Source: Trichosphaerium sp. ATCC 40318 (Eukaryota > Protista > Tubulinea). From it: a DNA stretch of 64,000 bases. Positions within the stretch are counted from its first letter, which is position 1, and every line of letters begins with the position of its first letter. The translations under genes were made by a program, and so were the position numbers. Location: the NCBI GenBank assembly GCA_038496445.1, contig JALMLS010000074.1:124001-188000 (forward strand), in the 5' to 3' direction. This document shows positions 57,801-64,000 of this stretch, in pieces. The notes beneath the pieces were generated by a model that saw nothing but the letters and a program-made list of their open reading frames with translations, did no database searches and was not told the DNA's origin.

Positions 57801-58054
57801 CGATTTTGCTGAAAATGGTGCTGTTGCGTACGAGGTGAAGTGTGCTTCTTTTTACCCTTTGCAGGCTTACTTGCGCTGTCTTTATGTTTTTCTTTCCCAT
57901 CAGGCGACTTGGTCTTCCTCTCGCGCTTGGAAGGCGTTCTTGTAAGGGACGGTGAGCGTTTGGGTTCCGGCTCCACTACAAGTTTTGTCTTTTTTTTCCT
58001 CTGTTTATGTAGATTATTGCTGTGTTTATCCTTATTGGACTCTTTCTTGCTCAT
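54826..58054 (-). CDS. Rap/Ran-GAP domain protein with a Lys/Ser-rich N-terminus (many exons)
   Basis: HFNFLG...GPIVVSV, FYITFQ, RKRHIGNDSIVIVF (catalytic Asn thumb), KVVNAQRA; TAA at 54826-54828. Confidence 0.85.
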
Positions 58055-59262
58055 TGTTAAGAACTTCCAATGGATACGTGGTGATTTTACTTCTAATCGC
58101 GTTTGATTGCTGTATAATACATATAATAATGTAAAAGCGTAAAAGCGAAGGTGTTGTGCTACTTGGGTAAGTCTAAAATCCTAAGCGAGCGTTTTCTGAT
58201 ATCAAAAAAGACTTAAATCGTTTTTGCTATGATTTCACTCCCAATAACTATATTATACGCTAAAATAGCGTTTACCGATACATGTTTTATTCTGGAAATA
58301 GCAAAACGAATTCGACTTTTTCGATAAAAAATTTGAACCTTGAGCTTTGTTGGTTTAAACGAAAATACGCTTTTCGTGCAATACACAAATCAAGAGTGTT
58401 CTGTTAGTGTTTGAAAGTGAGTTTAATGAATAGCAGTTTTTCTGACTACACGATCTTTGATAAATTATGTACCTCCTTAATAAAGCATTGTTGATACAAA
58501 AACCGCTCCGTAATATCATTCTAAAAGTTTTGTAGATTAGCTAAATTCGCGTAGACAAGTTTCTGTTTGTTACAAAAAACGGTTCGCAAGTTGTTTCAAT
58601 AGCTTGCTCAGGAGACGCAACCAGTACGTTATCGCGACACATGATGAAATACGCTTTTAGACCTATAGCACGAGAGTACAGCTCCAAAAATAGTATTATA
58701 ACTGCAGAGGTCTTGGAACACCACAATACTAGTAAGATAATTGTGAGCGAAGGGTTTGTAAATAAAAACTGTTTAGCCTTCCAAAATTGGCGATTAAAAT
58801 CAAAAAGATGAAAAATAACTATTTGTTGTTCCTGTTGGATCTTGAGATTGTATTTATGAATTATCCCCTAAGTGTAGTATCTCCTTAGTTCATGGGGTAT
58901 CATAATAGATAAAAACAAATGTTTCATTGTTTGACACTTTCTGTAAATCAAATACTTTGTCAACCTTGTAAAACAACAAAAAAAATCTGAAAATAGCGCT
59001 CACATAAACAATCACGGTGTTGTAGTTGTACTCCACATACCCATGAGTATCGGACAACTTATATGACAGACAGTAATTACTGAAATTAAAGGCAACTTTC
59101 GGGTTTTACAGAACGAAATTTCGGTATTTAAAAAAATAGATCCAAATAAAGAAACACAACGTTTTGTCAATATCATGTTTCTCTAATATTAGTTTTGGAT
59201 ATTTTCTGTATTAAAGGAGGTACACAGAATACACATGAGAAATATAGAATGGCTAAAAATAT

Positions 59263-60649
59263 CTACCACGGCCAATAGTATCTTTTCAATCCAAAAACTT
59301 TTTTGCCAAGGTCTGATGGTTTAAACTCGTCTAATATAATTTCTGCCATACCCTCTTCCTGTGCTAATGGCAAGTAAGGCCTTCCACTGTTAGGGTACCT
59401 AAGCAATATTGAGTTGTTTTAAAACAGAGAGTAGAAGAAGCCCATCATTTGACAGTCAACTTTTTTTTTTCAATTTTTCAAAACGAGGACTGTTATCATT
59501 CATTCTTATGACGTACATTCGAACATACTGAACAACTCTAAATCTTTCACTATCATTTGGATAATTAGCATGAAATGTAAGAGAGTTCCAAATCACCAAA
59601 GAACCTTTCCTCATTGATACTTTTTGAATATAATCTCGAACCGGATGGTTTTCTGGAAGTTGAACGTTTCCTCCAGCACTTGGTACCTCCAGAAGTATAT
59701 GAGGTAATTTATGTGATCCAGGAACACAATGGAATCCGCCATCTTGTACACGTGCATCAGTTAAGGTAAGTAAACCTTGAACATAAAGCGTTTTTTCAAA
59801 ATCTAACTTTTCTCCTTGTTTGAAGTGTGGATGGTTTCTATCTTTCTTAAAACCTGCAACATCTATTTTACCACTTGATGGATTACAATCAGTATGAAGC
59901 CATCTATCTTTTGTCTTCCAAGACGGCATATCAACAGGTTCTGACTTTTCTGGAAATTTTACATTTCTTGTTGGTCTTAGTACTCCTAAACGGTCGTAAT
60001 CGACCCATAATTTTGTAGTGTTATGTATAATACTGTAGGCTTTGTGTCTAAACCAAATTTAAGAGGAGAAGTTATAGTCAGTGAAAGTTTAAAAATACTA
60101 TTATGAATAGGTGTTTTGGTACGCTCAATTCACTGTCACCGAATTATTACGTCCACAGAAGCGGTATTTTAAGAGTTTTTTGTAATTGTTCGTTTTTTTT
60201 GTGTTTAAATCGTTGAGGAGTTTAAAAACAACGTACACGTTAGGGTTTTGTCTGTTGGCCATTAGGGGAGCGTCGAATGAGTACATAGAACCGATAATGC
60301 CGAGTTTACCAAATTGTTGTTTGTTCCAATACGGCTCCCACGTATTAGGATCATCCTGTTACGGCGTAAGGTTGCGTTTTAAGATAAAATGTACCTTATC
60401 TAATTCTGGTTTGTCCCAAAACGAAGCGAGAGTATTGTCAATATCCGTTGTAGATAGTACATCTCTAATAACGACGAATCCGTGTGTATCAAAAAATAGC
60501 TTAATTTGTTTCGATTCTGACACTTTAAAGCTAGGGTAGAACCCCTCGTCATCATAGCTTTGTTGTGATGCCTTGAGTATACTTACGTCTTCTCCAGACA
60601 GAGAAAACTTGTTTTCTATCTCCGCTGCATCTTTTTTCGGTTCAGCCAT
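59263..60649 (-). CDS. PhyH-family Fe(II)/2-oxoglutarate dioxygenase
   Basis: FFDTHGFVVIRDVL, WLHTD, GGFHCVPGSH, GSLVIWNSLTFHANYPN..RFR. Confidence 0.85.
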
Positions 60650-61550
60650 AACGTTAGCGTGTTTAAATGATGAAGGAAAAACCCGTTCAGGTACGTTTGA
60701 CGGGTATTGACTTGCCGAGAAGTTTGTAGCACATTCACCAGTTAACTGACTTACTGAAGTTGGCGTACACGGATTGTCAATACTCAAACAGTTTGCTCGC
60801 CAGTACTTTACGCTGTTTAAGTGTCATTGAATCCAAAGCAGGCACGTTGTATTAGGAAAAAAAGTATTATTGCAGTGTACTCTCAGGAACTTCTCGAATT
60901 TCTTCCTTATTAATTGCTAAGCCAAAAGACAATGCGAATGCAAGTAAGCTTCTATAAGCCTTTTGAGTGTCATGGACATACGTTTACTCATCACGTGATC
61001 AGTACAAAGAAGCAGAAAGGATTTTGTGTTGACAACAATAAACAGGCGCAAACGGCATGTTTAATATGGTCACAATACGTAGTATACGATAAAGCGAAGC
61101 CAGTAGGTTTTTATCTAGTTGCCTAAAAATTACTCACTTCACAGACAATAGCGATGATACAAAATGGTACTATTACAAGCTCCTGCAAACGCCATCTGTG
61201 ACTATTCATGAGATAAAATTGCCTCATTCCAGCAGCACCTATTAGTATATTAAGATCCAAAAGGTAGCAGTATACCAGTGGAAGATTAAGTTTGTTCACA
61301 AATAACGCTTTTCATGACCAGCGTGCAGCCTGAATTTCACTTCACGTTACTGTAAACCGTTTTCTGCTAAAGTTCAATAGCATGGATGGCTATTGTATTT
61401 AGGCGCGCACATTACGACATCCACTGTCTGTTTGACTACTCACAAAATGTGTTTCGAAAATTGGACCTTAAACAATGCATTCTAACAGTGAAAACGAGTA
61501 AAACTTGGGTACTTTATTTAGTTTTACATTCATATTGGAGTGCCAAGATC

Positions 61551-61954
61551 TCAGCAACTTCCACAAGCAGCTTCGCTCCAGCAGCACCATTTATCACTTC
61601 TGATGCGGAAGCATAATGGTGATCCAGGGTAGCAGTAGGCAGTTGAACCTAATAAATGTAAGTAAGAATTACCAACCTTTGATTTTCAAGTACATTGACC
61701 ATTCTTTTCACGACCACGTTTACGCCATCCAGGAGGACACCATCCATTTGTATCACATGTTTCACCACACAATAATGGCCCTTGCTAATTGGGGCGTTAA
61801 TTAACATACAATGTAGAAGTAGCAAGTGTCGACATACCTCAGTTGATCTCTTTTCGTGCATGTCTGGCATTTCTTCAGAGTCTTTAGATTGGGTCGTCAA
61901 GGCAATTGGTATCAACGCCAAAGTCACCAATACGAATAATATTGTTGTGTTCAT
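61551..61954 (-). CDS. Secreted Cys-rich prepro-peptide, copy A (3 exons)
   Basis: Signal plus acidic pro region ending KRSTE, an intron, then a 62-aa 10-Cys core identical to copy B; TGA at 61551-61553. Confidence 0.85.
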
Positions 61955-62312
61955 TTGTTGTTTGTTTAAAGAAGAGGTTTGTTGTTGGTTGAGGTTTGTA
62001 ATTTGGTTTTGTTTGAATGCTTTTACATTGACTTAAAGTCATGTTATTCACTGAAAAAAACTATCATAAACTATTTACCTCATTTCTTTTTCGCTAATTC
62101 AACACGAATTATCCATGTTCTCTTGTTGTAATTACACTGCAAACAGCACCGCTGTTCTATTTGAGTTTATATTAGGCAATAAAAAAATTACAAAGTTTCG
62201 ACACGATAAGATGAAAAAATTTACCATAACTGCACATGAAGTGAGACTTAAATCATCTTGACCTCCCAGTCACAAAACAAACCAGAACAGAACAACCACA
62301 CCTTATAGAACA

Positions 62313-62700
62313 ATGCAAACAACAATACTTTTCGCCTTTGTACTCATGGCATTGACTGTTGCCTTGGCGGTCCAATCTAACGAGCTCAGTGAAAGAGCTA
62401 AACGAGCAACTGAAGTAAGTCATGCTCTGATGTTACATTTACTTCGTATTCTAACGCCCCTTTTAGCAAGGACCATTATTGTGTGGTGAAACATGTGATA
62501 CAAATGGATGGTGTCCTCCTGGATGGCGTAAACGTGGTCGTGAAAAGAATGGTCAATGTACTTGAAAATCAAAGGTTGGTAATTCTTACTTACATTTATT
62601 AGGTTCAACTGCATACTGCTACCCTGGATCACCATTATGCTTTCGCATCAGAAGTGATAAATGGTGCTGCTGGAGCGAAGCTGCTTGTGGAAGCTGCTAA
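62313..62700 (+). CDS. Secreted Cys-rich prepro-peptide, copy B (exons 62313-62414, 62467-62557, 62603-62700; 96 aa)
   Basis: MQTTILFAFVLMALTVALAVQSNELSERAKRATE|QGPLLCGETCDTNGWCPPGWRKRGREKNGQC|STAYCYPGSPLCFRIRSDKWCCWSEAACGSC*; canonical GT-AG introns. Confidence 0.85.
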
Positions 62701-62873
62701 GATCCCAACTCACATATGCCTGTCATAAAATATCAATTCTCTGTAACGCTCTGTACTTAACTACGTTACTTAAATAAATAGTTAGTTTCCATACCCAAAA
62801 ACAAAACCGAACGCGGTCACTATAGTATACAATCACTATGATGTCACTTTCTTTCATTTTCAAACCAACGGAA

Positions 62874-63040
62874 CAAAAAAGTTGCAATAGCGCACGTGCG
62901 TATAGTATCATCTACGCACAGTGATGCATAAAATACAGTTTAACAGATACTTTCTCGCAAGTCGACAATTTAGACCGTACCAATACAAAAAGCTGCAATA
63001 ATGTGCGTATAGTATAATCTACGCACAGAGATTACAAAAA
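62874..63040. repeat. Direct duplication of a roughly 55-bp unit, each copy containing a GTGCGTA...TACGCAC hairpin
   Basis: gtgcgtatagtatcatctacgcacag (from 62896) and gtgcgtatagtataatctacgcacag (from 63003), each preceded by caaaaa(a)gYtgcaata. Confidence 0.65.
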
Positions 63041-63161
63041 AAAGGTTTTTTGCAGTTTTTTTTTAGCTTCTTTGGCGCAGAATAATTGGACACAAAAAAT
63101 GCTCTAACGAGCAATAAATTATTGTTTTTTTTTTAACTATTTATTGACTGTTTTTTACTAT

Positions 63162-63874
63162 TTACTTTGTGCCGCCAGATAACAGCATTATGCGCATTTC
63201 GCTCATCATTGGATCTATGGGAGTGCATGCTGGAAGTGTTGGAGGTGTTGTCAACATTATTATTGCATTAAAATTTGGACTGTTGATTGGAAACTGAGGC
63301 AATGGCTGACTTGTGAGAAGTGTCAACAATAGTTTAACAAGAATTGAAAGCAAAGACGGGTACCTGAAGGTATTTGGATTTGGAAAACTGAGCATTCCAG
63401 AGAGAGGTATACTTGATGAGACGAGTGTTGAACCTATTTATCAAATTGTTAGATGTTGGTGAGCAAATATTAAAGGTGTATTACCGCTGATATCTGTATT
63501 ATCGAACGTGCATTCTAATGTTGCAGTAATAAGACTAAGTCCATTAAAAGCGATATTGATTTCAACTTGCGTTGGATCAATATCAATGGCAAATTCCCTG
63601 CGAGATGAAACATAAAGGTACTCAGAATTCGGTGTTGAATCAGCATCATTTATAGCGAAGTTTGGAAAGTTTGGTCCCGTTGTTCCAGGCAATGAAAACA
63701 AGTCAGTCCCACTGGCGATTTTTAAGGCACAACGACCAGTTTCACCAACACCTATTTATCAATTAATCTAACCTAACACGTGTTGTAGGTTGTTTAGAAC
63801 TTACTAACTTGCGCAAAAGTTGTGCTAATAGATAGTATACATATAAAGGAAACAAGAGTAGCCACTTTTGCCAT
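63162..63874 (-). CDS. Uncharacterised secreted protein (3 exons)
   Basis: Signal peptide MAKVATLVSFICILSISTTFAQ; two GT-AG introns link it to the ORFs at 63441-63701 and 63162-63395. Confidence 0.6.
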
Positions 63875-64000
63875 GATGGACGATAAGCTGCGTATGTGAA
63901 GTGTAATGTGAATTTATTGTAAGGTGTGAAAACAAGTTACAAGTTTGCGTCATCATTTTCTGACTTTAGGCGTTAGAAGTCCATGACTGTACACTGAAAA

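Follow-up and report, generated by a model that had tools for sequence, protein, structure and literature searches.

Small secreted peptides of free-living amoebae are little known beyond the saposin-like pore formers and acanthaporin. The latter, from Acanthamoeba culbertsoni, has about 61 residues, five disulfides and a helical fold. It is antibacterial and pore-forming and uses a histidine pH switch, and the amoebapores and naegleriapores, also small and disulfide-bonded, are abundant amoeba killers of ingested bacteria (PMC5198042). Outside this group, peptides processed by Kex2 or furin, including defensins, macins, knottin toxins and KR-processed effectors of fungi, share a common order of parts: a signal peptide, a pro-piece, a dibasic site and a multi-disulfide mature part. 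Among amplified gene systems, silkmoth chorion comprises many divergent gene pairs with a spacer of about 300 bp and a signal-peptide exon split off by an intron, which undergo gene conversion and serve the bulk synthesis of secreted protein. For gene dosage, the closest analogy to the locus described here is the 'dominant toxin' Nv1 of Nematostella vectensis, whose copy number tracks its expression (PMC9842752).

The marine, multinucleate amoeba Trichosphaerium has a complex, polymorphic life cycle, and the draft genome of Trichosphaerium sp. comprises 70.87 Mb in 710 scaffolds with 37.69% GC (PMC10521059). The sequenced isolate bears a smooth fibrous test, and the words 'cysteine', 'antimicrobial' and 'secreted' are absent from the paper that presents the draft genome (PMC10521059). 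Within a stretch of 64,000 nucleotides of this genome (contig JALMLS010000074.1, positions 124,001 to 188,000; C96:124001-188000 in our numbering; 36-38% GC; hereafter the window), an earlier note made from the letters alone had pointed to a head-to-head pair of hidden genes for an identical cysteine-rich secreted peptide. Here we report that this pair belongs to a family of about 50 genes, which includes at least 11 such head-to-head pairs. Two distinct leader types recur together in nearly every pair, a feature that the earlier note had missed, and the mature peptide behind them has been held almost constant by selection. Taken together, the data make this almost certainly a real, expressed gene family.

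The two genes in the window were rebuilt by splicing, by hand and by script (Table 1). They are indeed divergent three-exon genes (minus gene 61551-61954, plus gene 62313-62700), with an ATG-to-ATG distance that agrees with the roughly 360 bp first given. All four introns run GT..AG and measure 45-53 nt, and the spliced products have 101 aa (minus gene) and 96 aa (plus gene). Both show the proposed order of signal peptide (judged by inspection), pro-piece, KR and STE or ATE, and both end in the same 62-residue, ten-cysteine core. As had also been suspected, the list of open reading frames misreads the mature parts, since it runs through the introns in wrong frames. The five silent differences between the two cores were located at 62472, 62613, 62643, 62694 and 62699, and each is silent or exchanges one stop codon for another, but as proof of the reading frame they are weak by themselves: the 3' halves of the partners have been homogenised recently, as their identical second introns indicate, so that five changes make thin coding evidence. 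Just downstream of the plus gene, a 46-nt element occurs in two direct copies 107 nt apart (62896-62941 and 63003-63048). Its first 26 nt can pair as a 7-bp hairpin (GTGCGTA..TACGCAC), and it is found at five places genome-wide at up to 2 mismatches and at none in a reversed control; an Rfam scan of window positions 58000-64000, this element included, gave no match.

Table 1. Features of the gene pair, in positions of the window. X1 is a public sequencing run described in the text.
Feature	Position	Strand	Description	Support
Minus gene, exon 3	61551..61648	-	core residues 31-62; stop TGA at 61551-61553	
Minus gene, intron 2	61649..61693	-	45 nt, GTACTT..AG; identical to intron 2 of the plus gene	
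Minus gene, exon 2	61694..61784	-	core residues 1-30 and 1 nt	
Minus gene, intron 1	61785..61837	-	53 nt, GTATGT..AG	
Minus gene, exon 1	61838..61954	-	type-A leader, 39 aa: signal peptide MNTTILFVLV.., then acidic pro-piece ..DSEEMPDMHE, KR, STE	script splicing; X1 contigs end exactly at 61838
Spacer between the two ATGs	61955..62312	.	358 nt; contains both promoters and 5'UTRs	
Plus gene, exon 1	62313..62414	+	type-B leader, 34 aa: signal peptide MQTTILFAFVLMALTVALA, then pro-piece ..NELSERA, KR, ATE	
Plus gene, intron 1	62415..62466	+	52 nt, GTAAGT..AG	
Plus gene, exon 2	62467..62557	+	core residues 1-30 and 1 nt	
Plus gene, intron 2	62558..62602	+	45 nt, GTACTT..AG	an X1 contig skips it
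Plus gene, exon 3	62603..62700	+	core residues 31-62; stop TAA at 62698-62700	
Inverted repeat, left arm	61547..61799	.	253 nt, 97% identical to 62452-62704	
Inverted repeat, right arm	62452..62704	.	253 nt, partner of 61547-61799	

When the window's own genome (70.28 Mb in 642 contigs) was searched in all six frames, 100 exon matches were obtained, and genes were then modelled in 30 regions. Exon 2 is present in 49 copies, and a strict filter kept 39 intact three-exon models; as this filter missed two further genes with leaders, 39 is a lower bound. The genes of the pair described earlier are thus real, but with 49 copies of exon 2 in the genome they are not a lone pair. A few family copies are broken or fragmentary. 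Exactly the core of the window pair is encoded by 25 genes, a variant with N28R by six, and a 63-residue variant ending in CGQTC by five, while the core coding sequences of the 39 intact genes fall into 38 distinct versions. The copies are dispersed on at least 20 contigs, and genes of variant 2 also occur singly, without a partner. We considered whether copy number is inflated by haplotigs, which holds for a few loci only: the loci on C15 and C584 are 99.7% identical, and these and a few others may be haplotigs. The remaining pair units are 82-90% identical between loci, which marks them as paralogues rather than haplotigs, and old ones.

Decayed copies, with in-frame stops, lost cysteine codons or a frame-shifting deletion, lie at L045:1152-1241 (C601), L047:1004-1245 (C185) and L032:23-244 (C524), so the family also sheds members. 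Degenerate exon-3-like fragments with no exon 2 nearby are found at L048:997-1077 (C25), L049:1036-1113 (C3) and L050:1067-1147 (C131). Each is enclosed by a copy of another repeat, about 0.9-1.4 kb in length and with 92-95% identity among the three loci; the copy on C25 (L048) yielded no telling open reading frame, and the repeat may be a mobile element that captured a fragment of a family gene.

The core is preceded by one of two leader types, or in a few genes by a chimera. Type A, with an acidic pro-piece, is 39 aa long and ends in KRSTE, against 34 aa and KRATE for type B. The exact type-A leader of the minus gene recurs at 12 loci. Searches of the genome with the leaders gave 22 type-A and about 28 type-B matches, and a wider use of these leaders by other gene families is excluded: every match sits beside a core exon, and both leaders therefore belong to this family alone. 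Both genes are intact in 11 head-to-head pairs. Without exception a type-A gene stands opposite a gene with a type-B signal peptide, although in three of these pairs the latter is a chimera bearing a type-A pro-piece; an additional pair on C55, made up of variant-3 genes, is type B on both sides. The pair unit spans about 1.16 kb, and likeness between loci stops near the stop codons. Alignment of the 11 pair spacers shows conserved blocks at 62045-62055, 62074-62097, 62220-62230 and 62243-62256, and the segment 62030-62040 is a rough mirror image of the last of these. Blocks that are conserved and partly mirrored in this way suggest that each gene of a pair has kept its own copy of the promoter.

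In the window pair, the arms of the inverted repeat take in the last 15 nt of intron 1 and extend 4 nt past the stop codon. Over exon 1 and most of intron 1, identity between the partners is only about 70%. Intron 2 is 100% identical between them and at most 85% identical to that of any other family copy. The 253-nt arms mark a recent tract of gene conversion between the two genes. Across the family, the core of the partner is the closest relative among all copies in six of the 11 pairs, that of the window included. Together with the identical second introns, this indicates that partners convert each other locally.

Conversion of this kind does not by itself account for the constancy of the peptide. 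Nei-Gojobori means for the core are 0.0077 for pN and 0.248 for pS, and a ratio of 0.03 at so high a pS shows strong purifying selection, not to concerted evolution alone, as what keeps the core nearly invariant. In the 34 genes whose core has 62 residues, variation touches 34 of the 62 codons and is exclusively synonymous at 29; almost every amino-acid change is a singleton. Synonymous-only variation on a family-wide scale settles the reading frame. Introns of the family are about 0.7 identical and 44-77 nt long (44-71 nt and about 0.71 for intron 1), and the 150 nt downstream of the genes are about 0.65 identical across the family. Judged from these comparisons, synonymous sites, introns and leaders drift while the core stays fixed. 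An invariant mature peptide behind variable leaders is the opposite of the pattern usual in toxins and antimicrobial peptides, in which the leader is conserved and the mature part diversified.

Evidence on splicing comes from the sole public run that matches part of the window (X1), which dates from 2015 and is stored as contigs; these derive from paralogues of the window genes, and the label of the run as RNA is a guess. One contig of 132 nt covers exon 2, joins 62557 to 62603 with omission of 45 nt (GT..AG), and carries at its 5' end the final letters of a type-A exon 1 joined straight to exon 2, so that both introns are absent at exactly the predicted borders. The splice junctions proposed earlier, including the donor at 62558, are therefore borne out by a cDNA-like contig, albeit one that represents a paralogue's transcript in a run labelled RNA by guess. 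Four contigs of 55 nt end at the exon-1 border 61838, and another of 190 nt covers exon 1 and 5'UTR (61863-62020) and then continues like the paralogue on C99; the type-A 5'UTR thus probably measures about 100 nt. Transcripts of the family are spliced as predicted, with several paralogues represented, and by extension from these contigs the two window copies themselves would be transcribed as well. A further contig of the run (397 nt, word depth 110) matches the window only over the 54 nt of 62740-62793, downstream of the plus gene, and is otherwise unrelated; this segment is probably a short repeat common to another abundant transcript.

The ten cysteines of the core are spaced C-3-C-5-C-14-C-4-C-6-C-8-CC-5-C-2-C, and its 62 residues include seven aromatic residues, eight Gly, five Pro and no His. 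The peptide had been called cationic, which is correct in sign, but it is only weakly so, with a net charge of +2 to +3. A basic loop, RKRGREK, lies between Cys16 and Cys31 and gains a further KR in variants 2 and 3, a change that is neutral on internal cleavage; a cut at the internal RKR into two chains is speculation. By inspection, all 39 leaders have signal-peptide features: a short n-region of polar character precedes a hydrophobic stretch of 15-17 residues, and the residues at -3 and -1 are small (in type B, for example, ALA before VQS). In each of the 39 intact models, and for both leader types, KR or RR followed by xTE closes exon 1. Matches to the Pfam domain P_proprotein (PF01483) exceed the cut-off at C36:153211-153381, C188:94006-94185 and C27:38486-38665, with a weaker match on C11; given the three P-domain loci above the cut-off, the amoeba probably has several kexin/furin-like enzymes. 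The layout of a kexin- or furin-processed precursor that the earlier note had recognised is thus matched on both sides, by the KR-xTE ending of the leaders and by convertase loci in the genome. AlphaFold, run from the single sequence without an alignment, gave unreliable models, the core at pLDDT 55 and the precursor at 58. The core model shows short strands only, and in the precursor residues 3-33 form a helix, with block-mean pLDDT of 81-83 over the first 20 residues and 60 over residues 21-30. A Foldseek search of the PDB with the low-confidence core model (pLDDT 55) found nothing at E <= 0.001.

Searches for relatives returned no homologue. The whole precursor matched none of the Pfam-A families in hmmscan at E up to 10, and this covers the profiles of defensins, macins, knottins, hevein-type chitin binders and small protease inhibitors. 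No homologue came from a word-indexed search of 5.8 billion proteins, nor a true one from an exhaustive phmmer search of 1.84 billion representatives, whose three matches were judged spurious, being internally repetitive, unrelated proteins. Against all PDB chain sequences, phmmer at E up to 10 gave chance matches only (MBD6, aerolysin). Of 475 pattern matches among JGI metagenome contigs none was confirmed, and four motifs of the core were not found in the texts of papers. The cysteine spacing, which the earlier note did not recognise, corresponds to no defensin, macin or knottin family in Pfam. Such blanks are provisional, because gene callers overlook three exons of fewer than 40 codons each, and the window's own genes are absent from the protein libraries. 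We would accordingly place the peptide in what appears to be a new, lineage-restricted sequence family within a well-known kind, that of secreted cysteine-rich prepropeptides, with the reservation that the libraries searched omit unannotated genes. Within that kind it is unusual in its invariant mature part, its paired alternative leaders and its copy number.

The explanation that we prefer, at a probability of about 0.4 as a whole, is that of an amplified family making one convertase-processed peptide in bulk as an effector against prey or competitors. The N-terminus would act as a signal peptide, cleaved on entry to the secretory path, and a kexin/furin-type convertase would then cut after the conserved KR, freeing a peptide with five disulfides, about 65 residues and a mass near 7.2 kDa, rich in aromatic residues and carrying the loop RKRGREK. 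The many copies would serve dosage, that is, bulk output of one fixed product, which is the reading that some 50 genes for an unchanging peptide speak for. Finally, the target of the product would be the envelope of prey or of competing microbes, reached either inside the phagosome or extracellularly. The parts of this explanation differ in strength: secretion and processing at KR are quite probable from the features of the precursor, whereas the role of a prey- or competitor-directed effector, which ranks highest among the roles considered, is a tentative assignment. Constancy of the mature part speaks against an arms race in which the target varies, and in favour of a target that stays the same, for instance a membrane, wall polymer, enzyme or receptor. 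Against an effector, the net charge is low for a classical cationic membrane-active peptide, and the diversification usual in toxins and antimicrobial peptides is reversed here.

Bulk output could also serve the amoeba's own cover, with the peptide as a structural or lectin-like part of the fibrous test that binds polysaccharide or cross-links fibres and is made in quantity as the cover grows. About 50 genes for one invariant product would be expected if amount and exact fit matter, and the share of aromatic residues, Gly and Pro in the core is reminiscent of hevein, CBM1 and similar small carbohydrate-binding modules. The smooth fibrous test of the isolate (PMC10521059) makes a bulk structural product a serious alternative. 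We nevertheless hold it to be somewhat unlikely: even at E 10 the precursor matches no carbohydrate-binding or structural family in Pfam, the even number of cysteines suggests closed intramolecular bonds rather than cross-links, the core is without the repeats or low-complexity stretches typical of matrix proteins, and the combination of pro-piece and KR site is found more typically in bioactive peptides. Peptide hormones and pheromones have just this prepro/KR layout, and the extreme conservation of every residue (pN/pS 0.03) would suit a lock-and-key ligand. A secreted signal acting through a specific receptor, be it a pheromone, an autocrine density factor or a morphotype factor, would also fit the complex, polymorphic life cycle (PMC10521059). 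Signals act at low concentration, however, which makes about 50 gene copies hard to explain, and no receptor candidate is linked to the family loci; such a role seems improbable.

Alternatively, RKRGREK, taken as exposed between Cys16 and Cys31, might be the reactive or bait loop of a tight-binding inhibitor of proteases or other enzymes that shields the cell from its own or foreign hydrolases. Many protein families of 50-70 residues with 3-5 disulfides are protease inhibitors, but neither Pfam (Kazal, Kunitz, TIL, WAP, antistasin, Bowman-Birk and other inhibitors) nor the PDB sequences yielded a match, and we consider this very improbable. The idea that the pair only looks coding, and is really the two inverted termini of a mobile element or repeat, or else an assembly duplication, could draw on the 253-nt inverted repeat, the recurrence of the unit on many contigs, the few near-identical loci such as C15 and C584, and the exon-3-like fragments inside another repeat. 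It is rejected on the data for selection and splicing, and we give it hardly any credence. A pN/pS of 0.03 at a pS of 0.25, with 29 codons varying synonymously only, speaks against it; introns are precisely removed in the cDNA-like contig; 39 copies retain both the GT..AG borders and KR-xTE; likeness between loci ends at the gene borders; and variant-2 genes exist singly, without a partner. The preferred reading, a bulk-made effector, can be carried further, to a core with a new five-disulfide fold that stands for a novel class of antibacterial or algicidal effectors in Amoebozoa, and whose two leaders, paired at every locus, route the same peptide to two destinations or regulatory programmes. 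This extension is unlikely as it stands. If it were true, the paired leaders would, for example, separate secretion to the outside from delivery to food vacuoles, or feeding from another stage of life.

Whatever its target, a peptide kept letter-perfect by selection over about 50 genes must matter greatly to the cell. The core offers a compact new disulfide-rich scaffold for folding and assay, and one product behind two leaders in each pair makes a tidy system for the study of leader function. The family is also a natural dosage amplification that would be upheld by purifying selection rather than by concerted evolution. That a whole family, probably highly expressed, can escape gene callers follows from its structure, in which every exon has fewer than 40 codons.

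Among described proteins, acanthaporin is the nearest in size, cysteine count and type of host, being likewise a small disulfide-rich protein of a free-living amoeba. It shows no sequence likeness to the core even at E 10 (phmmer, PDB chains), and it needs its histidine switch, whereas the core has no His; its fold is helical, whereas the weak core model (pLDDT 55) shows short strands only. The saposin-like proteins have six cysteines in an alpha-helical bundle, while the core has ten in another spacing and is without a saposin match in Pfam at E up to 10. With the peptides processed by Kex2 or furin it shares the order of parts, but its cysteine spacing corresponds to none of theirs in Pfam, and most of them vary the mature part where this family varies the leaders. 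Silkmoth chorion is alike in gene architecture only, its products being structural eggshell proteins of unrelated sequence. Nv1 bears no sequence relation to the core; as here, massive duplication serves one small disulfide-rich secreted product. The Nv1 copies, however, form one tandem cluster and owe their homogeneity, as it has been ascribed, to concerted evolution, whereas the genes described here are set in divergent A/B pairs on at least 20 contigs and differ at a quarter of their synonymous sites, with a protein that is held constant by purifying selection.
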